DNA of 63,773 bases, the filler included, from Bigelowiella natans CCMP2755 (Eukaryota; Protista; Cercozoa): the NCBI GenBank assembly GCA_000320545.1. It is 4 parts of 4 records of this genome, joined end to end, with 100 filler letters (N's around TTAATTAATTAA, not from the genome) between each part and the next. Parts side by side here need not be neighbours in the genome. Positions count along the whole stretch, not along the records: positions 28,194 to 56,828 come from ADNK01002802.1; 3 more parts are not named here. One strand, given 5' to 3'. Each line of letters opens with the position of its first letter. Position 1 is the first letter of the stretch. Shown piece by piece: positions 13,526 to 55,066 of the stretch. The translations under genes were made by a program, and so were the position numbers. A model generated the notes under the pieces. It had not been told where the DNA came from, did no database searches, and worked only from the letters and a program-made list of their open reading frames with translations.

Positions 13526-14557
13526 CATCATAAGGTATTTCATCATTATTATTTTTATTCACAAGGATGGTGTTGTTATGGTTTCGCATTTACCTACAAG
13601 GACTTCACTATTACTACTTCTACTACTATTTCTTCTATTACTACTACTACTATTACTACTACTACTATCTAGGTGTGGTTGCTTTGTCATCGCTACTACC
13701 AGGTGTTTGATCACGTCAAACTACAATATTTAAGCACTAGTTACTTACACATTAGTATTACTTGTTATTCTTACACGCAATAATAATAACAAGTATTTTA
13801 GTATTTCTTGTGGAAAGTTTGTAGTATAATAACACCATATTATTTTGTCATTGTACAACTAGTTATAGAGGTAGTAGTACTATTAGTCTTAATGGGTCTT
13901 GAAGCTGAATAACGAAGAAGAAGATGATGAAGAAGAAAAATAATAAGGGCAATCATAATATGATGAATATCACTATCACCATTTGGTGGTTATTCTTGTT
14001 GGTGGTGATGATGATGATGGCGATCTAAGAGTACCATGATTAAGATGTGCTTCATTTCCTCCTCATTGTTTGCAGTAAAAGTAATTTACCCCCCCCCTTG
14101 CTTCACCATTTGTTGCTCTTTTCTTCCTCCTCTATTTTTATGATAAACTCGTTCCTGATGCCCCTTTTCCTCCTCTTCTCTTTATTTCTTATTTATTTAC
14201 TTAGATTTCCACAAGATGCAGCTCGTCGTTATCACAAAGAGAAAGATTTCGAAAGCTGGAAGTAGTAGATAATACTGCCATATCCCTCAACACCCACACT
14301 TCACATTTCCCCTCCCCTCCCCCCCTCTAACGCCTGCTTGCGCTGCACTGCAATTTGTTACCTCCCCTCTCAGAAATCATCTTCAGATCATTGGAATGGA
14401 CTTTAGAAATACAAGGTGACTAAGCAATCACAGTAGTGTGAAAAGAAGAAGATGAATAATTAATAGATTATCAATAAATATACTACGGTATGCATTCCTT
14501 CCTCTATGCACAGTAGTTATGTCGTAGTAGTAGTAGTAGTAATATTTTGGCGTTTGT

Positions 14558-28193: not shown

Positions 28194-28222
28194 ACATTCT
28201 GGTATTCCTTCTTTCCCCCTAA

Positions 28223-28261
<39 letters not shown>

Positions 28262-28269
28262 CTAAAAAC

Positions 28270-28668
28270 GCCCATCAATAATCTTCATCGATGAAATCGA
28301 TTCCTTGCTATCGAAGAGGGACGCGGCTCCTTCCTAATTTCCTATGTTGTTTTAATATATTGCTCTCTTCTTCCTTGCGTCCTCTCATTTGCAGGGATGT
28401 TTTTGCATCTAATACACGTTATCCTGCCCCCCCCCTTCTTCACCCCTATCTTAAAAGCCATGCCTGCTATATCCTCTGCCTTCATTTCAACCTTGCCACG
28501 TTATGTTCATTGCTCAGAATGACCACGAGGCGTCATCACGCCTAAAGACGGAGTTTCTCGTAATAAACAAGCATCGTTTGTTCTCCGATTGCATGCATAG
28601 AGTACATGTTTTCCGAGGACGCAATGATAACGATTGATGATAACGATGATGATGATGATGATGATAAC

Positions 28669-28704
<36 letters not shown>

Positions 28705-29124
28705 TGAACCGATGAAATTCCCGTCACAGAGAAGATTGTAAATTGTAAATTTGGAAGGGCGATCCATCTTATCCCCACCCCCCCCCTTCCTCCCCAAATC
28801 CAAACCCTTGCTTTCATCTAAATATTCTCTAGATACAAATGGACGGAGTTGGGTCTAAGGAAGGCGTATTTGTGCTCGCCGCGACGAACCTTCCGGACCG
28901 CTTGGTTGGTAACACCGTCTGGCGATAACAATCAATATTAACCATATCTTTAGATGCTCGCCCTCTCTCCCAACATGCCCTCTCCCACATTGATGAAGGC
29001 ATACCAACGTTCCTTTCATTTGGCTTTTATGCAATGGTGGTAACAGGATGATGCGCTGCTGCGACGTCTTACCAAGCGTTTCTACGTTCCCCTCCCATCG
29101 ATGGAGGTGTGAGTGAGACTTATG

Positions 29125-29163
<39 letters not shown>

Positions 29164-29164
29164 T

Positions 29165-29201
<37 letters not shown>

Positions 29202-30815
29202 TGCAGCATCTTCCATGTACCGCAAGTAGTAGTAGCAGCAGCCGTGCTGAAAAGAATACCCTACGTTCGAACGAAGCGACTGATATTGTGCCCATGCAGA
29301 GGGGAGGGGATGTGCGCGAATATTTGTAGTCAAAACGCCACTAGGTAGCAGTTGACTTTGAATTGTGACTGTCGCTGTCTTTCCCCCCCTCTGCGTGCGT
29401 CTCTTGTTGAAGGCTCGCAAAGCAATCGTCCAAAAAATGCTCAGAAAGCACAAGGTAGCAGCAGCAAACCAACACGTGCTTGTGGTGATAGATGCAATCC
29501 AACCAATACACGTTGCCATACTCAATTTTCCCTCGCTGGCCTTGAAGATTATGCCTTGACTCTTTTCCTTTTTGGGGGGGTGGGGATTGCGGGGAATGAA
29601 TTTAGGAACGTCATCTGCTAGGAGCGAAGGATTTAGAAAAAATAGCCCGTGCGACCGATGGGTAGCTATCTGAATGTATCCTGCACTGAGTAACGAAACT
29701 GATGGCCTATTTGCTCGAATCTCTCGCGCGTGCTCTCCCACCGATAAAATAGTCGCAAGATGATGCAATGTGGTGCGATTTGTCAGATACTCGGCGAGCG
29801 ACGTAGCTGCTGTAGTCAAAGATGCGGTAGTAGTTTCAGTGTAGGAATGCAAATGATGTTCGTTCGCCGTTTTTCCTCTTCACCCCTCGAAATAATGGCG
29901 TTTTTCCTTCTGCAGGCAATGGGGCCTATCAGAGACATCGATCCGAGCGTGTAATTATGTGATATATTTTACATATATTTCTACATGTAAATATACATAT
30001 GTGTATGTGTTATATATGCATATATTTCATGTATCGTGTTGTATGTTTTTGTTCTTATTCTCCTGACAGTATTGCTGATATTGGGGCAGATTGCGTACAC
30101 TACCACCGAAGAAGATTCCCCCAATCAAGGTCTGCCTGTAGAGCTTACTCAGTAACAGCAGCAGTACACGCGCCGGTCAGCTGCCTGAATGCACGCGGTC
30201 TCTAATTGTCATTTCCGCGACAATCCTCTCAATGTTTAGATCAAGCACTTCATGGAGGCAATCAGCTCTATCGAGAAATCGGTACTACTGTGTTGTTGGC
30301 TGGATGCTGAATCATCGACGATATAGCTAGTCGAGGCATGCGATTGTGCTCGGTCCCTGTGTGATGTGCCCACTTGATGGGATTGTTTTGTATGAAGTAT
30401 GAATTTCCCTTTCGTCGTTCATGCTGTTTCGATTCGTCATCTTCTATCGCTTTTGCGATGCAGGTGTCGGAGGCGTCTCTAGAAAAGTACAAGGTAATTC
30501 TTCCCATCACCCCAGTTGGCCGGATTTTGCCCGCACAAAACAACAGCCTAAAACGTACAATGCGTTCTGTTTTGTGTTAAGCAAGACTGCATTTTCTGCA
30601 TCTTTAACCCATCCATGTTGTCGTCTTCATTAGCAGAAATGCGCGACCATTTTTTATTGTTATATTCTGGTTATTACTTCTCATCATACTCTACGTGGTA
30701 GAAATGGGCGCAGAAAAACGATGGCGTGGGAATCGAAGAGTCGAAGCACTCACGAGCTGCTGCTCCAATAGAAAGAAGAAAATCTCGGATTTTAGCATCC
30801 TTAGGCCTGTGTTGA
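28270..30815 (+). CDS. Meiotic-clade AAA+ ATPase (spastin/fidgetin/katanin-like), 3' part; 5' part lost in the gap
   Basis: PSIIFIDEIDSLLSK (Walker B), NDHEASSRLKTEFL|IQMDGV, TNVPF..DDALLRRLTKRFYVPLP (second region of homology), YSASDVAAVVKDA|AMGPIRD, VSEASLEKYK|KWAQKN..LGLC*. Confidence 0.9.
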
Positions 30816-31487
30816 CTGGGAAAGCTAGGACATCATTGGGGATGTTGTGGATGAATGTCATTATCAGCATTGCACATCCACAGTGCACTACCATTTTCCT
30901 GACTGCATTTTCGTGCTCAGTCCTAGAGTCTCCAGACACTCGCTAGCTCGTCCGTCTGCATGCATGACAAGATGAACGTGCGGGTGTGCAACATGTGCAC
31001 AATCACGTTGCACAGCATTGATGTTGCACGCAGCACAGGCAGTTCATTGCTAGTTTGACAGTGCACATCTGGACATCGTGTCCATTGCTAGATTGTCATT
31101 CTAGCCTTTTGTGAATGAAACCTTTTGGTCAACAACTGCCATCGGAATCAGTCAATCTGGCGATGTCTAGCGATGCGCTCACTTGTGACATCAAGCAACC
31201 AGCCTAGCAGCGCTAGAGCGTCCCTGTCATCCCGTGGCCAGCGCACGTCTAGACGTCTAGACGTGTTGGACCGGGGAGCAAGTTGAAAGTGTCCTCTGCA
31301 TGAGAGCGCTGCTGTGAAGAACAATGAATGAAGCATTGTTGCAAAACTGCAAAACTACATGCGCATAAGCGCCAGAACCACATGGCTAGATGGGAGACAG
31401 GCGTGTGCATGCAGCAGCGCCTGGCGAGGTCTTGCCAGTACGAGTGAAAGTGAGTTTTGAGTGTTGAGCGCAAAAGAGAAGAATCTC

Positions 31488-32170
31488 ATGGCGTCTTTGT
31501 CCTGCGACAACGAAATAATTCGCATTAGATCTAGTAAATAAATTATCATCTGAAACTTCGCCGAGATCCCATGGAGTAGGGTTAAGACAGCAGAGCGAGC
31601 CGCAAGAAGGGAGGGCGGGGGGATCCATTCACTCAGCCCCCTCGTTCCCTCCATTCAAAGGTGTGGGCGCAGATTTCGACGCTCCTCGCGCTGTGGACAA
31701 TCGGGGCAGACGCCGCCAGGGAAAACCCCATTGGCGACAGCGCGCTGTTGTGCCAGGTGTTGATTGTTGGTTTGGGGTCGGTGGCGAGGGCGTTCTTCCC
31801 ACCGGAATGGGGGTCTTGCACGGTCGTTACGGATTCATTTTGCGCGGCCAATCGAAGAATTTGAATATGTGGGCGGCCTCTGGCAAAATTCCATTGATAG
31901 ATGTCATCTGCTGCGTTGGGTTTCTCATCGATAACGTGTTCTTTGTTTGTGTAAGCAATGCGGCACTGGCTTTCGTTTTGAGTCATATCTCAAGGCGCAT
32001 AAGTGCCGTAGCAAAACGGTGCGGGAGATCCAGTGCCCCCGCGTAAGGAGCGCTAGATACTAATTGTGAATCCGAATCATGAGTTTTTGAGAAAATGCAG
32101 AGGATGTATGTCCTCTGGCGATTTGGGCCGATGTTTAACGATTTGCACTTCCGGAAAACACACACACACG

Positions 32171-32231
<61 letters not shown>

Positions 32232-32867
32232 CTAAAAACGCAATCGCGTGCAATGGTGAACGCATAGACCGCTATTTTTCGGGCTCATTTCTCTCAGAAA
32301 CACCCATATAGTTTTTCTCCTGGCCTGGCATCGTATCGGCCTTCTTCCCATAGATGATGTGCTGACTCGTATAATCCTATATTGCTGTGTCCTTTTCTCC
32401 GTCTTCTCCAGTGCCCGAAGCGATTCGCATATAAGAGGCTGTACGTGGAGCATCTGTCCTCGCACAAAGCAAAGCGGCCACATACATGCTCTTGTGGGAA
32501 AAGGTGGGTGTGTGGATATGTGAAATGCGTCTCTCGGAACATGCTGCCCAATCACCGATCACTAGTCTCTTCACATGTGTTGCGTCCTTGCGCGATGAGC
32601 CGATGTCTTGAGGATCCATCAATAAGTCCTTTGAACACCAACTCTGGTCCCGCCTCTCGAATCACACTTGCGAGATGCAAGCCAGCTCAATCAGCAGTCC
32701 TACATTCACAGCCGAACGATGACATGTCTAGGCCACACTTGGCTGCACACGAATGTTATGTACGCCCATGTTTTAACCAACAAAACAATATATCGGTAGT
32801 TTCAAGTTGGCTCGCCATTTCGACCTGCATCAAATACGGTAAGCAACGCTATTAAGCACACCTCCCT

Positions 32868-32912
<45 letters not shown>

Positions 32913-32939
32913 CTTCATCTCTCGGCCGCACACACACAT

Positions 32940-32972
<33 letters not shown>

Positions 32973-33161
32973 GATAGCATTAGTCGGAAATACTACATCG
33001 TGCATCTTCTGTAAAGAATGGGTATATGAACGTGTATTCGTGGTCGCAAACTTGATAATTGAACTCATATTCGGTCTATCGTTGTTGGCACTATTCGTTG
33101 CTACAGGTGCAAGTCAATCAAGGCCTACAAGTGCCGCTTTTGTCCGGTAAACGAATTAGAA

Positions 33162-33208
<47 letters not shown>

Positions 33209-33251
33209 GATGTGTGTCTCCTTCATCAGCATTCATTATAACTGCCTCCGG

Positions 33252-33284
<33 letters not shown>

Positions 33285-33521
33285 TTGTATAATATCATCT
33301 GTGCGCGCATTATGCTAAAATAATTCTTAGTGTAAATAATTCAACGAAGGTTTTGGCGCTTGGTTTGACAAATGCCATCGATATTCTCTCTGATAATATT
33401 TTGCTTGCGTGCAATGCTGCTGGTGCTGCTGCAGGCTACGTTTTCGCTGAAAAATCCTGATTTGGTTCGCCATGAGCGAGCGAAACACACGGTCGGTGCT
33501 CTGCACGCACAACACATCAAA

Positions 33522-33591
<70 letters not shown>

Positions 33592-34106
33592 GTAAATGTA
33601 TATATGACTAAAAGAATTCAACTTACATTATAGATAAGGAGAGCAGGGGGGGGGGGGGGGGGGGGGAAACAAAAAGGGGAAAGGAAAAACATCAGCTGGG
33701 CAATACCCGGACTCCCCGGCGAACCCGTGCCCAACGTGGGATCGAAAATTCCCCCACGACGGAAATCTCCGGCGGCATCTACGCACTGTCCATACAGGGG
33801 AGAAGCCATTTCGCTGCCCTTCATGCGACAGGTGGTACATAGAGAAAGCACGGCGACGATGCATGCGTTTCCAAAGATGATGAGGAAACTTCCCATTGAT
33901 AATGGCGCTGGTTGTTTTGTATTGAAGAGCGTTTTCGCGGTCGGATTACTGCCGGGCGCACATGCAGGATGCCCATCGGATTGAGCATGGCGACCCTATC
34001 AATGAGAATCAAAGGTAATGCATGAGTTTTCGGCGGCTCGCCTGTGCTCCGCGCTGAGTCGCACACGCTTAGAACAACCATCCTTTGTGACTTTTGGCGA
34101 GAGGCG

Positions 34107-34177
<71 letters not shown>

Positions 34178-34480
34178 GCGTTGCGTGTGTTGTGTGTGAT
34201 TGAATACATACGAACATGAAACACAGTAGTATTCGAGGTTCCCTTGTATCTGATAGCGGTGTGTGATCTAACAAGGGAGGAAGTTGTCGAGAGTGGCAGC
34301 AGCAACTCAAATAGCGACGACGACGACGATCTCCCTCTCAAACATCCTCTCAAACGCCGCAGGCGGCACGATGACAACACGAATGCAATGCAGCAACAAG
34401 CGTTTAAGCATGATGAGCACTTGGCCAATAGAATGACTCTAACCCAGTTGCCTCAAGGGACATCGGAAGTTTTTGTTTGA
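31488..34480 (+). CDS. C2H2 zinc-finger protein, multi-exon; start uncertain
   Basis: CPKRFAYKRLYVEHLSSHKAKRPHTCSCGKR (32412-32503), FKLARHFDLH (32800), AYKCRFC (33122), HLRTVHTGEKPFRCPSCDR|AFSRSDYCRAHMQDAH (33776-33976) with a canonical TGEKPF linker. Confidence 0.85.
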
Positions 34481-35623
34481 AGAACCAAATGGCATCGTTG
34501 GGACCATGTCGCTGCAGTGTTGCGACATCGATGTCGTGCCAGACATGCGCACATGTCGAGACGCCATGTAACTACGCTCATCAACCGCATCAATGATCAA
34601 ATCACAACCGAATTCAACATTACATGCAGCATGTGTCGCAATGTTGTGTGTACGTGCATGATGTGAGATGTTGCCCATCACACGCAATGATGATGTCATC
34701 ATGTGCGCACGCTAGCACGTGCAGTGCATGCTCTTGCATGTCTGTAGGTGTCTAGATGTGTGTAGCTACTTGCTGGAGGAACTCAATTGCAATCAAACAT
34801 GGCGCTCTGTTCGCAACGATGGCCATGCAGTGTCAGCAAGTTCGTCCATGCGCAGTGCATCGCAGCGCTCATCACCGTGAATCGGATCTCAACGTGCCAC
34901 CACATGCTAGCATGCGTGCACACATGGACACACATGTCCCTACACGTGTAAGCCGTCTACGACATGCATGTGTACATCACGTAATTCACATGTACCTATA
35001 GCTACACATGTGCCAAAGTGAACAGAGCATGTGTGCTTTTTAGGTGCATGTGGTGTGCATGGGTACATGTGTTCCTTACGCGTACACGTATGTGGACACA
35101 TATGTCCCTATATGCAGACGTACATCTTCTTCATTCTACATTAAATGATACGACCACACTACAGAAGCCATTCATCATACGCGCGTGTCAATCAACTACG
35201 CAGATCATGCTACTTACCATGTTGTAACGATGATTGACGCATGTTGCTGTTCACAGATGTGCTCATGCAAAGCACGCAGCAAATAGATAGACTGATTATA
35301 AACAAGATATACAACAGCGCATGACTAAAATATACATATATTTTTTGCCTAACTAAAATCGAGAAGTAGAACTGCTACATAAAGTACTATATTTGCCAGG
35401 TTTCACTTTTGAAGTCCAGTGCTCTAAAGATATGGAAGAAATGAAGGATAGTAGGACAGTTGCGGCCTTGCGCTGAGGATTGACGACGACAACCCTGAAT
35501 ATTCGCACTCGTCATTCTGTGCCCCCCCTCACCCTTCTCTATCCATATCATGGTGTCTTCAACACCCATCGTATTTCGTGCCCGGCATCACTTCACTTCA
35601 TCCTCTACAATGTTACCAGCTCA

Positions 35624-36831: not shown

Positions 36832-37693
36832 TCCTTTTTTTAAATTTTTTTGGTATTGCATTAATGATGTACATAAGCGATGATTCGGAAATGTTCTTTC
36901 GGCCCAGCGGTCTCCTCACTGTCGAGACGACGGTTTTTCTTGTTGACGGAAAGGTAGTCATTTCTAAAGTTCATCAACGTCACGCTGCAGTCCTCCTCGT
37001 TTCTGACAACCTGAACGAACATGTACGTTCAATCGATTATCTTACTTTCAAAGACCAATTTCAAACTATGCTGAGAGGGATTAGGGTGAAACACGATGGT
37101 AAGATCGGGGGAAGCTAGGAGAGGAAGCTCGCCGCTTGGCGTGGTAATAGTAATAGTATCAGTAGTAGTACTAGTAGCATCTCGATGAACTTCTGTGGTT
37201 TTTGCTGCATTGTGGAGTTGTACCTTGAAAATATCTGCTCTCCCCTTTTTATCTATATGCGCTACTCGGCCGTTGGGTCTGATCTTGAGATAGGAGCCAT
37301 GAAATGTCCTGATTAGGCAGCATGACTATTCAGAACAGTCACAGGAAGGACGATTGAAAAGAAATGGAGTGTTAGCGAAAGAACAGTTCGTGGGAATGCA
37401 TGTCCTCACTTGATCTTCATAAACTGCGGTAGCTCAACGAGTTGGTCTTCCTTCTTCTTGTCCACGTCCCCCTCTTGCCCAGTGACTGTCTTCACAGCGT
37501 CTTTCACGTCTTCTTCCTTCACAGGTACGTTCTTTACAGCGTCTTGCACGCCTTCATCCTTCCCAGCTAGGCCCTTCATGGCATCTTTCACGTTACCATC
37601 CTGTCCAGTAACTTTCTTTACAGCTTCTTGAACGTCATCCATTGCGTCTCCCACCGCATCCTTTAGCTTATCGAAGTTGAAGAAATCTCCCAT
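35624..37693 (-). CDS. Hypothetical protein with N-terminal ~14-aa V(K/Q)DAVKxVTG repeats (LEA-like) and a helical acidic C-terminus
   Basis: The 37406-37693 ORF ends at a gtgag donor. Further exons at ~37224-37290, 36547-36690, 36054-36210 and 35624-35890 are coding-like. Confidence 0.55.
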
Positions 37694-43094: not shown

Positions 43095-43822
43095 GAGTCG
43101 TTGTAGGATGCTTGTTATGATGACCGAAGCATCACGACATTTATACATTATGTGCTTATGCATTCGTACCCTTTTCCTCGATGGAAACATGTTGTTAGAG
43201 TTTTGGTGCTGCTTGCGATGTGCGTTGCAATGACTGACTGGCGACCATTGCCGCTACTTCGCTAGTAGCTATGAAACAGCAACACGGTCATGGGGCTGTA
43301 GTGCGATTATGCGTACGAATCGAAGCCGGTTTATTGTCGTGGCCATGCAAGCTAGGTATGTGTAGCTTATGCGCCAGCTTGTGTGTACGTGTGGACGGCG
43401 ACATGTTGATGCAGCATACGCCATGCTATTATGTACGTCTGTGATGGCCCGGCAGCCTGAGCAATGATGACACCTAGACATTGCATTTTCTCCACACATT
43501 GCACATGCGTGCACACTAGCTAAGTCACATAGATTGAGTGCATGTGATGAGCAACATGCAGTATGTACGTAGCACTCGACTCACATCTAGACATCACAAT
43601 GTGTGCAAGGTGCTTGTTCATGGAACCTACAATCACACATGCTTGGCTAAACTGTTCAGAAACATCCACGCAGCATGCATGCGTCGTCGTTGATATATTT
43701 GTCATTTTGTGATGCCTTATTTGGGTTGGAGTGATAAATTGCCAGATGATAAGCATGTCTTATTGTAACTCATTAGTGGATATGCATCAAATCACCGCCG
43801 CTATATTTCCTCAACATGATAG

Positions 43823-44606
43823 TTAAACACTGGTGCGAGGCGGTCTACTATGCTTACTACTCAATTCCAACAGAACCTCGGAAGTCGTCCGTGTTCTGCA
43901 GTACCCTGAAAAGGCAGAGAGCGCATTTATGTGCCTCTCGTGGGACTCTGTGGCGCAGGCATCCTCGATGCATTCCATGTAGAATCCCCTGTCAGCGCCA
44001 TCACGAATAGCCATATCGATACACTGATCCGTGAGGAAACCGCTCACGAGAACGGTCTCTATACCGATGTTTCGAAGAACGTACTCGATCATGGTTGAGT
44101 TGAAAACCCCAGAGGACGTCTTAGGGAGGACAATCTCGTCGATGGATGGCTCGATCGGGGCGATGACCTGTGGCAGATTTAGTAGGAAAGAGAAGCTGTA
44201 CAAGCGGGCAGAAACACTACGTAAGATGATTCGGTGACCTGAGCCTCCCACGAACCTCGAGGGACATTGAATCCAGATATCTTGTAGTCAAGGCTTCTAT
44301 CGCGACCATCCAGAGTCAGGTTTTCGATCACAGTGAACAGCACTTCAACTCCAGTACGCCGGCACTCGCGCTGCATGCATGCTGGTTTAGCGGCCATTAT
44401 CAGTTGGGCTATCTGTTCATCAGACTCTCTTACGAAAGGAAACCTATATTCGGAATGACGATGTTCTCTGCCCGGTTCCAAAACCAAGGCCTCCGCGTTC
44501 TCTCCTCATCGTTGAAAGTAAGATTCTGGACATCGATTATCAGTAGGGCCGTCTTTCGCGGATCGAGTGAGCGATTCCGGGAATACCTTACCGTGTTTAC
44601 ATTCAT
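43823..44606 (-). CDS. Isochorismatase-like cysteine hydrolase (amidase family)
   Basis: TALLIIDVQN, DGRDRSLDYKISGF, DEIVLPKTSSGVFNST and GFLTDQCI..AIRDGADRGF..IEDACAT give the D-K-C catalytic triad; 2-3 introns. Confidence 0.9.
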
Positions 44607-45334
44607 GTTAACGCTAGGGCAAGATGATATATAGACGAGTACGTTGAGAACTTGCGAGTCAGAACCGATATTCCCGTCTTCATCATCCTCGCTCCCTCCG
44701 CAGCTTGTCTAACAATCACACTGTAATCACACTCCGAAAGCACGTTTGTGTTTCGGGTGCCGTTGGATGGAAAACCAAGATGGCGTGGAATAGTGGTGCG
44801 AACTCAGGAATTTTTTCCATGCCGAACAGCAGTGATCGCCAACAAGATCATTGCTAACATCGAAAGTAGGTCTATAAAGGGCGGCGATTACAAGAGATGA
44901 CGACGGCCTTGAGAATTGAGAGGAGGGAGAGAGAGCACAGACAGAATCTGCTAAAATTCAACAAGCCGAAGACGCTGTCCCAAAAAAAAAGGATTCTAGA
45001 TTTCTAGATTTTTGTCGATATTTTTGTAGTCGCAAAGGCAAGACGGATGGCAGTCAGGAGAGTTTTCGCAAAAAATGAGAACATGCTCAAATCTCAAGTC
45101 GCCAAGGAAAAACAGGAGGTATTTCACGTGTTTCATAAATATGGGCATGCAAGCAACATGAAAACACTCGCAATCAAGCTGTACTCCGGCATTGAGAAAA
45201 GGAATATCTCGGAAAAACATAAAAAAAGTGGAGTTATTTTAATAGTGCGACTTGCATATTTTTAGTCGCAAGACAGGAAAACGGGTGCTCAGCGGAACGA
45301 AGTGCCCTCGAGCACCGTTCCGCAAAACTCAAAC

Positions 45335-46531
45335 ATGTCTCAAGGAGAATCTAAAGCTACTATGAAGGTCATCGTGCTGAAATCTGTTCCTTCCTCCTCC
45401 TTTTGAACCATGCTATGTTTCTCAGTACAATGTTCTCGGCAGCACCGGGCTGAAAGTGAGCGAGCTCTGCCTTGGCACGATGACATTTCAACAAGTAGCG
45501 ATAAAAAGGCCTTTGGATGGATGCCCCCTGTCGATGAGAAGGGTTCTCATGATTTTTTGGACCAGTTTATTGCTGCTGGAGGCAACTTCATTGACACTGC
45601 CGATGCTTATGCTTCGAGTGAGGAAGTCATTGGGAGATGGATTAGCAAACGCAGTGAGAAGGATCCAACATTTCGTGATGACCTCGTGATAGCTACGAAA
45701 GTATTTTTTGGTTCGGGAAAGAACACCAACGGGCTAAATCGTCCACATGTGTTCAAGGCAATTGATAAGAGCCTCAAGCGTCTGCAAATCGACTACATCG
45801 ACCTCTACCAAGTTCACACCTACGACTACACTGTGAGCGTTCGAGAGGTAATGACAACCATGAAGATTCTCATCGAAAGGGGTAAAATATCGCACTGGGG
45901 AGTGTCAAATTGGAAGGCATCTCAAATTATGGTAGAACTTTGTTTGAATTTTCCAATTGGATCCTGTCTAATCGTGGCACACGCAATGATGCTTGCGCAA
46001 TTCTCATCGTAGGAATGCATGTGGCTATCAAGTCAGTATGGTCTTCCAGCTCCCGTTTGTCTTCAGCACAACTATTCACTCCTCTCACGTAACCTTGAAT
46101 TCGAGATTTTGCCGCTGGCCAAGCGATTCAATTTGTCTGTGATCTCCTGGAGTCCTCTCCAGGGTGGGTGGCTCACAGGAAAGTACAAGAAAAGCGAGAA
46201 ACCTGACTCCAATTCTAGGGTTGGCGCCGCTGAAGGGAAGTGGAAAATGACGTCATATTCAGAGCACGACAACGATCTCACTTGGAACACTCTTGCGGAG
46301 TTAGAAAAGATTGCCAAAGAGTGTAATGTGTCCCAGTGCGCGGTTGCATTGCGATGGAACCTTCAGTCAGAGGGCATTACGTGCCCTATCATCGGCGTGA
46401 AGAAACCAAAACACTTCGAGCAAGCTCTTGAAACTGTCGCATTCGAACTGAGTAAAGACCAAATGGATAGGCTAAACAAAGCTAGCACTCCGAAAATTCC
46501 TTATCCTCATGAGTTCCCTTGTAAGAAATAA
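45335..46531 (+). CDS. Aldo-keto reductase (Tas/aryl-alcohol-dehydrogenase-like); apparent frameshift near 45488
   Basis: LGSTGLKVSELCLGTMTF, GGNFIDTADAY, LVIATK, SLKRLQIDYIDLYQVH, WGVSNW, QHNYSLLSR, WSPLQGGWLTGKY, CPIIG. Confidence 0.92.
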
Positions 46532-47276
46532 ACAGAGTGGACGAGTACATCTTCCAGACGGCGCCACACATGGCGCAAGAGCTGGATCTCGATTCTAAGG
46601 ACTTTTATTAGTACCTTTGATAGGAATGATAGGTAAAGCTAAATAATTTTGACAGAAAGTCTCCTCAACTTGCTATATATAGTTATATATCATAACGAAA
46701 AGTGTCATTGCTTACACTACTTGCAAGTCATGTGCTAATTGCGTTCAAGGCCACCATGATGTCTACTTTGGCTCATTGCTCATCAACACATGACATTGCA
46801 AGCATGTTTTAGAATGATGCATGCAGCATTTTAGCATTGCATGGTTATCTAGCTCCCCCACGTACTGAACAAACACCACGGAAATATATTCGGACATCGT
46901 GCATGTACCGTCTGCTTATTCTAATTAGTCGATCAAATATGCGCAGCAAGCGGACACCCCGACAAATAACAGCAGCGTGGCTAGGTGTGCAGCGCAGTGA
47001 GCTAGCAAATATACAAGCGCAGACGTACAGGCTCTTTAGATCTGCGGTCGCATTATCAGTCATTGCGACTCTCTCTTGTAATGTGACACCGCACGATGCC
47101 AATCTAGCAACGTTCTTTGTTTGGTGCATGGGACGCACACTTCAATGATGAAGACCACTACACACTCATGATTTCCAGACATTCGTGGATGATCATGTAG
47201 TCTTGCTGTGGTTGAAATTCTTCCATTTCTCAGACAATGATGCAGAGTTGTTGTCATAGACAACGTAACACAATAC

Positions 47277-47313
<37 letters not shown>

Positions 47314-47655
47314 ATGAACTACATTTTTAAAATTGATGTGTGGGCCCCACCAAACAAACGAAACGAAAACACTACCACAACAGGCGACAATTACATGCTA
47401 GCATGCTACTTCTGCTAGCTAGCTAGGCACACAGAGCTCGACATATTGTCATAGTGGGAACAACAAAAAAATAGATGATGAGATTCGTGGTACAAGCTGT
47501 TACAAACTCTGTTATATACTACTTAAGCCAAATTTGAAAATAAACTATGTGCGTGATGACTATATAGACTAGCTGCTGTGGCAGCTCAACCCGTGTCAAA
47601 GAACTAAACGACGCACGGAAGTATGGAGGGATATCATGAACATTGCCGGTAATCA

Positions 47656-51368: not shown

Positions 51369-52461
51369 CCTAATTTCCCCCCCAGAGTCTACATGGAGGG
51401 CACGGCAACAATCAATACTAGCTTCTTTCGACACAACCCTGAATGGAAGGTACGCGGCGAATGGTGCAAATTTGAACGTAAAATGACATACTCACCGAAG
51501 ATCATTGGATTGCTGGAGATGACCTTTTGCATGCTACTGGGAAAGACGCAAAGCACAATGATCAACAGTATCGGCGAATGCAGTGCAGTCAGAATGTCTG
51601 AACATAATGTTCGTGGAAGAGAAAGTGAAGCAAAACACTTTTACGTGCCTCACTATAGTCCCCTCTCTCCCCACGTCCATACAGGTTGACGGGTGGTATC
51701 ACCTGAGAGCTGGGTCTTCGAATCAAGTGATGCGAAAGGTGATGATGTGCTGTATGCTTTTTTTATTTTTACCTTCTCGAAAAAATATTTCTCAAACATA
51801 GATATCGTCTGCTACCTGTGCCATTTGATTCTTTGTCCAATAGATTGTTGGACAAATCAAGATCAGAGCGGAGCTTACGGTGCCCGAGGGCTGTGACCAC
51901 CCACCAACACTAAAAAAAAATCCTTTCCAATCGCCGCCTCTGCAAGAAATGGCGGAGAATCTCAGGCGGACAACATCGAATTACAGCGAGCCTATGCCGA
52001 TGACGATGGCGATGAAACTACTCTCCGTTGTGTGTGAGGAGGACAGCAAAGAAGCAACGCCTCTAGTGAATGCTGCGCCGCAGATAGATGGCGACGCAGA
52101 GCAGCACGATGGTAAAATTGAAGACAGATCATCGTCCCGAGTTATAGACGAATGGGATGAGGGCAGCTTAGACACTCTCAATCGATTGATTGACACTGAA
52201 ATCTGGCAAGAGGGCGAAAATTGGCGACGACGCCGTTATCGAATCCCTCTTTCACTAGGAAAAGAAGGAGACCTTAGACCTTCGCCTTCGTCGGGGAAGA
52301 ATGAAGGATGGCGCCCCCACCAGTGCTTAAGTGTGGAAGCATCAGATCGCTTTGAGGAAAATGTCAATGCCCATGTGGTTTTTGCCCAAATGGCCACACT
52401 CTCTGAACAGCTTCGCTCTAGAGCTTCAGATCGCTCTAGAGCTTCACAGTGCACAGAGTGA
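50066..52461 (+). CDS. Hypothetical multi-exon protein with a probable C2 domain
   Basis: Exons DIKVTVSDNLK|VYMEGTATINTSFF|VDGWYHLR|IVGQIKIRAEL resemble the C-terminal strands of a C2 domain. Long flanking ORFs lie at 50066 and 51880. Confidence 0.55.
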
Positions 52462-53079
52462 CAGACATAGCACTGTCATTAGACAATGGCTTTCTAGCTT
52501 TCTGTGGTGTGCCAATCTAGCGATGCAACGTCATTTCTGTGCATTGGAATGATGACGTGAGCAGTGGATGACATGCTCAAAACGTCCGCTAGTTAGCATG
52601 AAAATGTCTGTGCACGTTTTGCACACGCAAATGATCACTCATGCGTGCATGCGTGCGCACGTGGCGTCAAAGCAAGCATCACAGCACTGGAGCACGTGCA
52701 TGATCGCACAATGTGAATCATTGATCGACGACTGATGATGGAGATGCGATGCACATGATCCGCACTAGCGCAGTGCCTGACAGCAATGCGTTGTCACATG
52801 CCAACAAACACGATCCGGTTGCCAGCGCGTCGTGGCACGTCACTTGCATCATTGATGATGAGCACGTGCTAGCGTGGCAAACATGCATGCCATGTGAGAG
52901 ACGACTGCACGATGTCCATGGTGATTGTGAAACTTTTCTCCTAAAATATCAGTTGATTTATGACATACGACAAAAAATATATTACTATTATGAATAAAAA
53001 CGGCTTGAATTGTCAATTCTGTGATAAACATTTCCCGAGATTTTGATCTGACTTAACATTCCTCAATGGTTCCTTGAGC

Positions 53080-54264: not shown

Positions 54265-55066
54265 CAAACAGTGTGGTCACTATACCATGCCAACCCAGCT
54301 GGCCAGCTGTGTGAAGGGAACGGCAAATGCGCATGGATTCAGCCTGTCTTGCTGGCTAGCTCCTAGCTGTGCCTGTATGAGACGGATGTGATGAAGCGAT
54401 TAAATTCTTTCAATAGTCATCTTATCTAATGTAGCTTAGCTATGCAAAGCGCGGCTATGTAGCACCTCTGTGCATGCACGTTTTGTTCTGCACGGCTAGT
54501 GCAGACAATCTATAATAGACATGCATGCACGCCTCGAATGTACCTCTAGACCTCCTACTTCTCTGCTACCATGCATAATCCAGTCTAGTACGTAGGAATA
54601 TCTAGACTCCTGTTTTCATTGAGCGCATCTCACCAGTCTAGCTTGCAGCGCCAGAACGCAATGTTTAACGTGGCCAGCTGCTAGCCAGATTCTCCAGATA
54701 GATGCCGAAGCAAATCTAGAAATCATCGTTGTGCTAACATGTGTGCATGATCGACAATGTGCATGGGCATCACGCGTATCAGAGCGCGCTAGCGCGTGTC
54801 ATCTGGTGGCATGCAGTGTGCGTGTTCGTTCATTGTTGTTCGTGGTGCATGAGCTGGCAGACGTCTAGACGTGTACGATGCTGCACACACTTACTTGCAA
54901 TGCTAGAATTCCTCCTGTGCACATGTCCTGCTACATGCATCCCATCTAGCTATGTATGTACACACAGCAGCAGTGACGCCATTCTAGCATTGTGATTACA
55001 CTAGTACATCACATTTGTCCCGAATGAGTTTTGAGTTTACATTGCCAGTAGCTTGATTCCTTTTCA

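Follow-up and report, generated by a model that had tools for sequence, protein, structure and literature searches.

Mutation accumulation (MA) in Bigelowiella natans has revealed a TpA→TpG/CpA hypermutation (Mettrop et al., 10.64898/2026.01.13.699255). Two integrated viral regions hold 231 of the 302 point mutations, all but a few of them TpA→TpG or CpA, and the mutation rate in these regions is ~1000 times the background in some MA lines only (10.64898/2026.01.13.699255). [quoted passage not shown] The terms CTAG, TAG, UTR and downstream are absent from its text. The core mechanism, A-to-G mutation at TpA in B. natans, is already public in this 2026 preprint, and the mutator proposed in the original prediction thus exists, though not as a new system. 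It is the only natural DNA process of such a kind that we found described.

Adenine deaminases of the TadA, ADAT2 and ADAR families and the base editors resemble the process proposed here in that they convert A to G via inosine and favour a 5′ pyrimidine. The natural substrates of TadA and ADAR are RNA. Activity on DNA has been described for amphioxus ADAT2, as cited in the preprint (10.64898/2026.01.13.699255), and TadA-derived editors favour YA, with one variant preferring YAY over YAR (PMC12528748). Among the B. natans mutations, the 5′ T and the deficit of 3′ G fit a preference for a 5′ pyrimidine with a disfavoured 3′ purine, and three CAT→CGT changes fit YA, whereas TAA is a good and frequent target that misfits a strict YAY>YAR preference; a deaminase is a hypothesis in the preprint as well as here. 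Fungal RIP and 5mC decay are likewise context-specific, region-restricted transition hypermutations with a dinucleotide footprint, but they convert C to T with a gain of TpA. RIP requires duplicated sequence and a sexual cycle. It is ruled out for the locus described below, which has lost TpA and is single copy, and the opposite direction of change had been recognised correctly in the original prediction. Base J of kinetoplastids is not known to act as a TpA mutator. Base J and 5hmU, like the CTAG motif of the islands below, are a DNA-level feature concentrated at transcription ends (PMC4150806); the likeness is only an analogy, any modified base in chlorarachniophytes being hypothetical.

The window is the whole stretch of 63,773 nucleotides of B. 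natans DNA, filler included, and the analysis covered one 28.6-kb piece of it (28194–56828), with the following features (o/e, observed/expected; islands and the multi-copy element have no strand).

28194–30890, + strand: multi-exon AAA-ATPase gene, truncated on its 5′ side where the piece begins (exon match, splice joints, RNA)
30892–31355: I1, TA-erased, CTAG-rich, single-copy 3′ flank (composition, depth, database searches)
30923–31260: ten CTAG sites of I1, at 30923, 30943, 31050, 31088, 31101, 31167, 31204, 31213, 31249 and 31257
31369–31510: short multi-copy element, right border of I1 (depth 2000–6800 versus 77–80 for single copy)
31609–34440 (right end approximate), + strand: multi-exon gene with a C2H2-like zinc-finger exon (RNA, GT..AG joint)
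34480–35300: I2, 3′ flank between convergent genes, CA/TG-rich and CC-poor, TA o/e 0.72
43230–43760: I3, 3′ flank of a tyrosyl-tRNA synthetase gene (+) and an isochorismatase-like gene (−), TA o/e 0.86
46720–47260: I4, 3′ flank of an aldo-keto reductase gene (+) and a WD40 gene (−), TA o/e 0.66
52400–52935: I5, second strongly erased island, at and past the end of a + strand gene, TA o/e 0.30
54270–55000: I6, 3′ flank with 14 CTAG, TA undepleted (o/e 0.97)

I1 is 464 bp long with a GC content of 50%. Our recount agrees with the original prediction that it contains ten TA dinucleotides, all within CTAG, the other 15 NTAN contexts being empty. Its dinucleotide o/e values are 0.35 for TA, 1.67 for CA/TG, 0.50 for CC/GG and 1.40 for GC. 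The gap free of TA outside CTAG extends over 467 bp (30889–31356), the runner-up in the piece being 348 bp (52594–52942). In order-1 and order-3 Markov simulations of the piece, with 200 runs per model, the longest such gap had a mean of 144 and 156 bp and a maximum of 244 and 269 bp, respectively. Since the gap at I1 exceeds the maximum of all simulations, its TA erasure is confirmed as real. CTAG occurs 10 times versus 0.72 in dinucleotide shuffles, above 2000 of 2000 shuffles. Of two other four-letter words described as abundant, TGCA is above expectation (11 versus 7.2) but CATG is not (4 versus 4.8). I1 (0.35/1.67) and I5 (0.30/1.88) both pass the preprint cut-offs of TpA Rho ≤0.43 and CpA+TpG ≥1.52, which were defined on 1-kb windows whereas I1 and I5 are ~0.5 kb each; the remaining four islands miss the TpA cut-off. 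ACGT is found 13 times in I1 and I5 versus 3.6 in shuffles, an excess that is unexplained by TA erosion alone, and CGAG/CTCG is depleted. In Table S6 of the preprint the mean TpA frequency over 324 predicted CDS is 0.0018, far under the 0.022 of I1, so that certain genome regions are without CTAG too.

I1 gave zero matches to Rfam, Pfam and phages. A structured non-coding RNA is ruled out by the absent Rfam match together with an RNA folding z of only −1.5, and searches for a coding remnant gave nothing. Short tandem duplications bearing CTAG occur inside and outside I1: a 22-nt perfect palindrome (31244–31265) contains an 8-nt repeat (31246–31263), another 8-nt repeat lies at 44994–45010 and an 18-nt repeat at 52416–52445, and at 47415–47426 CTAG stands three times consecutively.

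The gene upstream of I1 probably encodes an AAA-ATPase of the spastin/katanin type; its exon 28833–28904 matches AAA ATPases (E 1.5e-5). Reads were mapped across 29220–32150 for copy number, mRNA ends and splicing. The main AAA-ATPase mRNA stops at ~30890, and ordinary TA is still present in its 3′ UTR, the last at 30889. Past the mRNA end, at the left edge of I1, depth falls from 25 to ~1 in raw reads and from 221 (the RNA contig 30700–30890) to 9–16 in contigs; by these shallow data I1 is transcriptionally silent or weak. The claim that untranscribed DNA is the target is to this extent supported for I1, which begins where the mRNA ends. I1 is single copy at 80% likeness: a 1186-nt DNA contig, identical across 30234–31419, has an ordinary depth of 77.

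The element at the right border is present in ~25–85 copies by depth. The copy at 31369–31510 has 8 extra letters at 31382, where CTAG is flanked by two ATGG; the insert is missing from 1911 of the 1995 depth of repeat copies, most of which have one ATGG. This arrangement resembles the footprint of a transposon or an insertion that duplicated 4 nt, and the element has no exact match among the viral contigs. RNA contigs of the downstream gene begin at 31609, with a GT..AG joint at 31754–31954 and a CxxC..HxxxH pattern in the ORF 32382–32855, a short exon with no Pfam match. None of the genes identified within 28194–56828 is a deaminase, and the candidate Bn78255 is encoded elsewhere.

The same composition had been predicted to recur elsewhere in the piece, which holds for I5 but not for I2, I3, I4 and I6. 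Ten TA are left in I5 (seven CTAG, two TTAG and one ATAG), and all ten have a 3′ G. The TA o/e of the controls is 0.54 in coding exons, 0.60 in promoters and 0.83 in introns; introns therefore keep their TA, as had been stated. I1 and I5 are below all three, whereas the other four (0.66–0.97) are not below exons or promoters. Truly TA-erased islands in the piece are thus two of six. I2, I3, I4 and I6 all have a CA/TG excess and a CC deficit, and three of them a CTAG excess, that of I2 being not significant. In I3 the CTAG sites are clustered past the mRNA ends (43682–43757), and in I4 the WD40 mRNAs terminate at 47201–47319 with five CTAG inside their UTR. All six islands sit behind gene ends, while none of the three divergent promoter regions looks similar. 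The islands are mutually unalike, the 15 pairwise scores falling within the range of the shuffles or on its border even with cheap transitions. Together with the single-copy depth of I1 this rules out a single low-TA repeat family, in agreement with the original prediction.

Across the piece, CTAG is found at 12.0 per kb in the flanks, 1.3 in promoters, 1.5 in exons and 1.5 in introns. When regions were set by gene ends rather than by composition, the 600 bp behind nine stop codons (three of the nine positions approximate) contained 8.9 CTAG per kb versus 1.7 elsewhere (p 7e-13). CTAG in the flanks is enriched 4–5-fold, beyond mere sparing.

How the known mutator treats a TpA followed by G can be read from Table S2 of the preprint, which gives one flanking base per side and was counted by hand. 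Folded to the A strand, the base 3′ of the mutated A in the 235 TpA hits is A in 74, C in 57, T in 81 and G in 23. TAG against TAC (23 versus 57, p 1.8e-4) corresponds to a ~2.5-fold penalty, not normalised to viral-region composition, and bears out the predicted protection by a 3′ G. On scaffold 10 the TAG hits are uneven by strand (3 of 91 on top versus 17 of 115 on bottom, p 0.008). On the same scaffold, mutations 450383 and 450385 lie two bases apart in one line, which suggests a processive event. In the large viral region there are four A:T→G:C mutations outside TpA versus 0.017 expected, all four at ApT and three at CAT. Outside both viral regions, A:T→G:C mutations are at TpA in 9 of 17 cases (p 0.005), none at TAG and two on scaffolds free of virus-like ORFs; the mutator therefore leaks past the large insertions. 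The sole MA mutation on scaffold_80 is G>A. Within I1 itself no difference was found across four sequencing runs; transcripts of the reachable strains are 99–100% identical, too alike to polarise substitutions, and halt at the island edges, and metagenome scans for other strains gave nothing or one transcript.

Most MA de novo insertions and multi-base changes write ACA or TGT (ACA, GACA, CAACA, ACACA, TGGC→AACA). They suggest a second, unremarked signature, as would arise if breaks were repaired mutagenically or pieces resembling LTR ends were captured.

The original prediction explained the composition of the islands by a TpA mutator that spares CTAG. An equilibrium model that combined the MA background with a TA mutator to which CTAG is immune reproduces the high CA/TG, CATG and TGCA and the low CC, but leaves CTAG at 0.2–0.5 of expectation versus 3–4 observed and yields a GC content of 36%. 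It fails as a full account: with CTAG this low under full immunity, sparing is unable to lift the motif above expectation. A general enrichment of palindromes by fold-back copying was rejected, as only CTAG, ACGT and CATG are clearly up among the 16 palindromic 4-mers.

A different origin of the CTAG excess is indicated by one 24-kb locus of Amorphochlora that carries the WD40 orthologue and a neighbouring PB1 gene. The regions behind these two genes contain 18.2 CTAG per kb (33 versus 9.6 in shuffles) with a TA o/e of 1.43, while the introns contain 2.3 per kb. A CTAG-rich flank can therefore exist without TA loss, contrary to the idea that TA loss alone made the pattern. Since TA is intact there, this type of flank probably predates the erosion, as judged from two flanks that are non-orthologous to I1 and serve as a proxy for its ancestor. 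The Amorphochlora flanks (14250–14510 and 14890–15045 of L001) consist of degenerate 8–11-nt CTAG/GTAC-rich units amid (AT)n tracts. In other chlorarachniophytes the 3′ UTRs contain three CTAG in 640 nt versus eight in 5047 nt of CDS, the UTRs being short and weakly informative. The 3′ UTR of the Partenskyella WD40 gene (1593–1767 of L005) is strongly purine-pyrimidine alternating, with nine CATG in 175 nt and TA intact, so that part of the island composition is common to the class.

The Amorphochlora flanks were eroded in silico and compared with I1 and I5. With CTAG immune, the model and observed values are 0.49 and 0.50 for GC content, 0.29 and 0.33 for TA, 1.95 and 1.79 for CA, 0.51 and 0.39 for CC, 0.74 and 0.83 for AA, 4.6 and 4.2 for CTAG, and 5.8 and 5.4 for TGCA, and the 3-mer correlation r shifts from −0.21 to 0.91. 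With only a penalty of 0.4 for a 3′ G, no more than 0.4 is left of CTAG, and CCAG reaches 2.4 where 0.9 is observed. The measured penalty by itself loses CTAG and is ruled out as the sparing rule; CTAG must be shielded beyond the half-site effect. For eroded introns and promoters r is likewise high, at 0.82–0.86, but CTAG is 0.1–0.5, so that the fit in r comes mostly from TA loss and the CTAG level alone discriminates. Not reproduced are the GC dinucleotide (observed 1.49 versus 1.17 in the model) and ACGT (3.2 versus 1.0). When a weak CAT→CGT route was added, ACGT rose and the overall fit was unimproved; secondary CAT, CA or AT routes were rejected on this ground.

We propose a two-layer explanation, a CTAG-rich 3′ flank eroded by a TpA mutator with CTAG blocked, to which we assign a probability of roughly 0.55. 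In the first layer, chlorarachniophyte genes, as seen in B. natans and for two genes of Amorphochlora, would be trailed by a CTAG-rich 3′ flank. In the second, an A:T→G:C mutator would hit TpA on both strands and turn TA into TG or CA, reaching some flanks with little transcription, over the interval between the mRNA end and the promoter that follows. The mutator is most likely a TadA/ADAT-type adenine deaminase that makes inosine. A G 3′ of the target A would slow it ~2.5-fold, as estimated from the published mutations, and CTAG as a whole palindrome would be almost immune, most likely because the site is modified on a base or occupied by a protein. Erosion would vary by flank: complete in I1 and I5, it would be partial or slight in I2, I3, I4 and I6. 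The viral hypermutation shares with I1 the species, the change on both strands, the low-TpA/high-CpA+TpG footprint and the candidate chemistry, A deamination by the ADAT2-like Bn78255, and we infer that the same mutator made I1. Host gene ends are probably among its targets too, with CTAG spared.

A more specific version of this proposal is that a CTAG-specific modification or binding protein marks chlorarachniophyte gene ends and shields CTAG from the adenine deaminase in weakly transcribed DNA. We regard it as conceivable but doubtful. If true, a mutator would be paired with a mark that protects its sites, in loose analogy to restriction-modification, and the boundaries of transcription units would be defined as well.

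Whether an enzyme is blocked at CTAG or the motif is retained afterwards separates the two-layer explanation from the first alternative, in which the mutator erased TA and purifying selection kept CTAG as a cis-element, such as a termination, boundary or nucleosome signal. The confinement of the motif to 3′ flanks in two genera, its under-representation in introns and exons and its skewed neighbours (T/G before, A/C after) would suit such an element, although TA erosion beside CTAG would yield the same skew. A process that removes all other TA would have to be withstood by every one of ten scattered and redundant copies, and the 3′-G effect is visible already under the minimal selection of the MA lines. 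Since each of ten redundant sites could be only weakly selected, a block at the mutation step is favoured, and we consider selection unlikely.

It is quite unlikely, too, that I1 is a decayed transposon or viral fragment struck by the known anti-foreign mutator, as an ordinary case of the preprint. The link of low-TpA sequence with viral and transposon origin in that study (10.64898/2026.01.13.699255) and the multi-copy element adjoining I1 point in this direction, and heavily mutated remnants would escape recognition. Yet I1 is single copy, shows no similarity to the other islands and has no match in the databases searched; its left edge is an mRNA end, and the location behind gene ends is shared by all six islands and none of the promoter regions. 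The preprint frames the target as foreign DNA and deals with viral insertions, with predicted CDS and with 1-kb windows clustered in groups of three or more; different from these, I1 is 0.46 kb of single-copy DNA behind a host mRNA end, with CTAG kept and no current mutation seen.

Still less probable is a regeneration of CTAG during TA loss, by 5mC decay of CCAG/CTGG to CTAG or by short insertions and duplications, or a T lesion read as C in place of A deamination. For regeneration, the flanks of both species are low in CC/GG and those of Amorphochlora have half the CCA (14 versus 29), one CTAG has been gained or lost as an 8-nt indel in the repeat copy at 31382, and 8-nt CTAG tandem duplications exist at 31246–31263 and 44994–45009. 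However, CCAG is undepleted in the B. natans flanks (26 versus 19), the MA list has neither a CCA hotspot nor a CTAG insertion, and in the simulation TA erosion by itself lowers CC. As for an oxidised or hypermodified thymine, like 5hmU or base J, A→G and T→C are indistinguishable by sequence alone, and Pol II termination sites of kinetoplastids carry base J (PMC4150806), but we found no literature on thymine modification or nuclear 5mC in Bigelowiella, nor a B. natans methylome. Very improbable is an I1 made by no TpA mutator but by selection on DNA or RNA structure or by ACA/TGT-rich micro-insertions, for although MA indels are mostly of this kind and intergenic in 17 of 21 cases (preprint Table S2) and the Partenskyella UTR is CATG-rich with its TA intact, insertions supply CA/TG yet leave TA in place, ACA, AACA and CAACA show no excess over shuffles (which rules out an ACA-insertion origin), the fold z is low, and a mutator of exactly matching signature is documented in B. 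natans.

What appears to be new, on the two-layer explanation, is the exemption of CTAG, the location in host 3′ flanks and a CTAG mark common to two genera. The sequence rule, by which a 3′ G slows the mutator and CTAG nearly stops it, could be used for screening candidate deaminases. The location rule, single-copy DNA behind mRNA ends, would imply a mutator of untranscribed chromatin, not a purely anti-viral one, and the surplus of CTAG downstream of genes, common to two genera, hints at a 3′-end mark not described before.

Some further observations concern the genes of the piece. The exon 37406–37693 (−) contains four 42-nt repeats, encoding a lysine/aspartate-rich unit of 14 residues with no confident Pfam match, and belongs to a multi-exon gene that extends to ~35700. 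The WD40 and isochorismatase-like proteins cluster with JGI Bigna1 models of scaffold 80; proteins of the window are 99–100% identical to clusters containing Bigna1 143660 (aug1.80) and 50459, and the transcripts are 99–100% identical, which identifies the window as nuclear DNA of B. natans. Two low-TpA models of Table S6 (aug1.80_g18347-8) lie on the shared scaffold, ~20 gene models from the WD40 gene. The next relatives of the two proteins are in B. longifila, Lotharella, Gymnochlora, Partenskyella and Amorphochlora. The isochorismatase-like gene (43823–44251) and the aldo-keto reductase gene (45410–46531) are arranged head to head, and after the chlorarachniophyte hits their next relatives (60–75% and ~50% identity, respectively) are mostly bacterial; both are possible old horizontal transfers.
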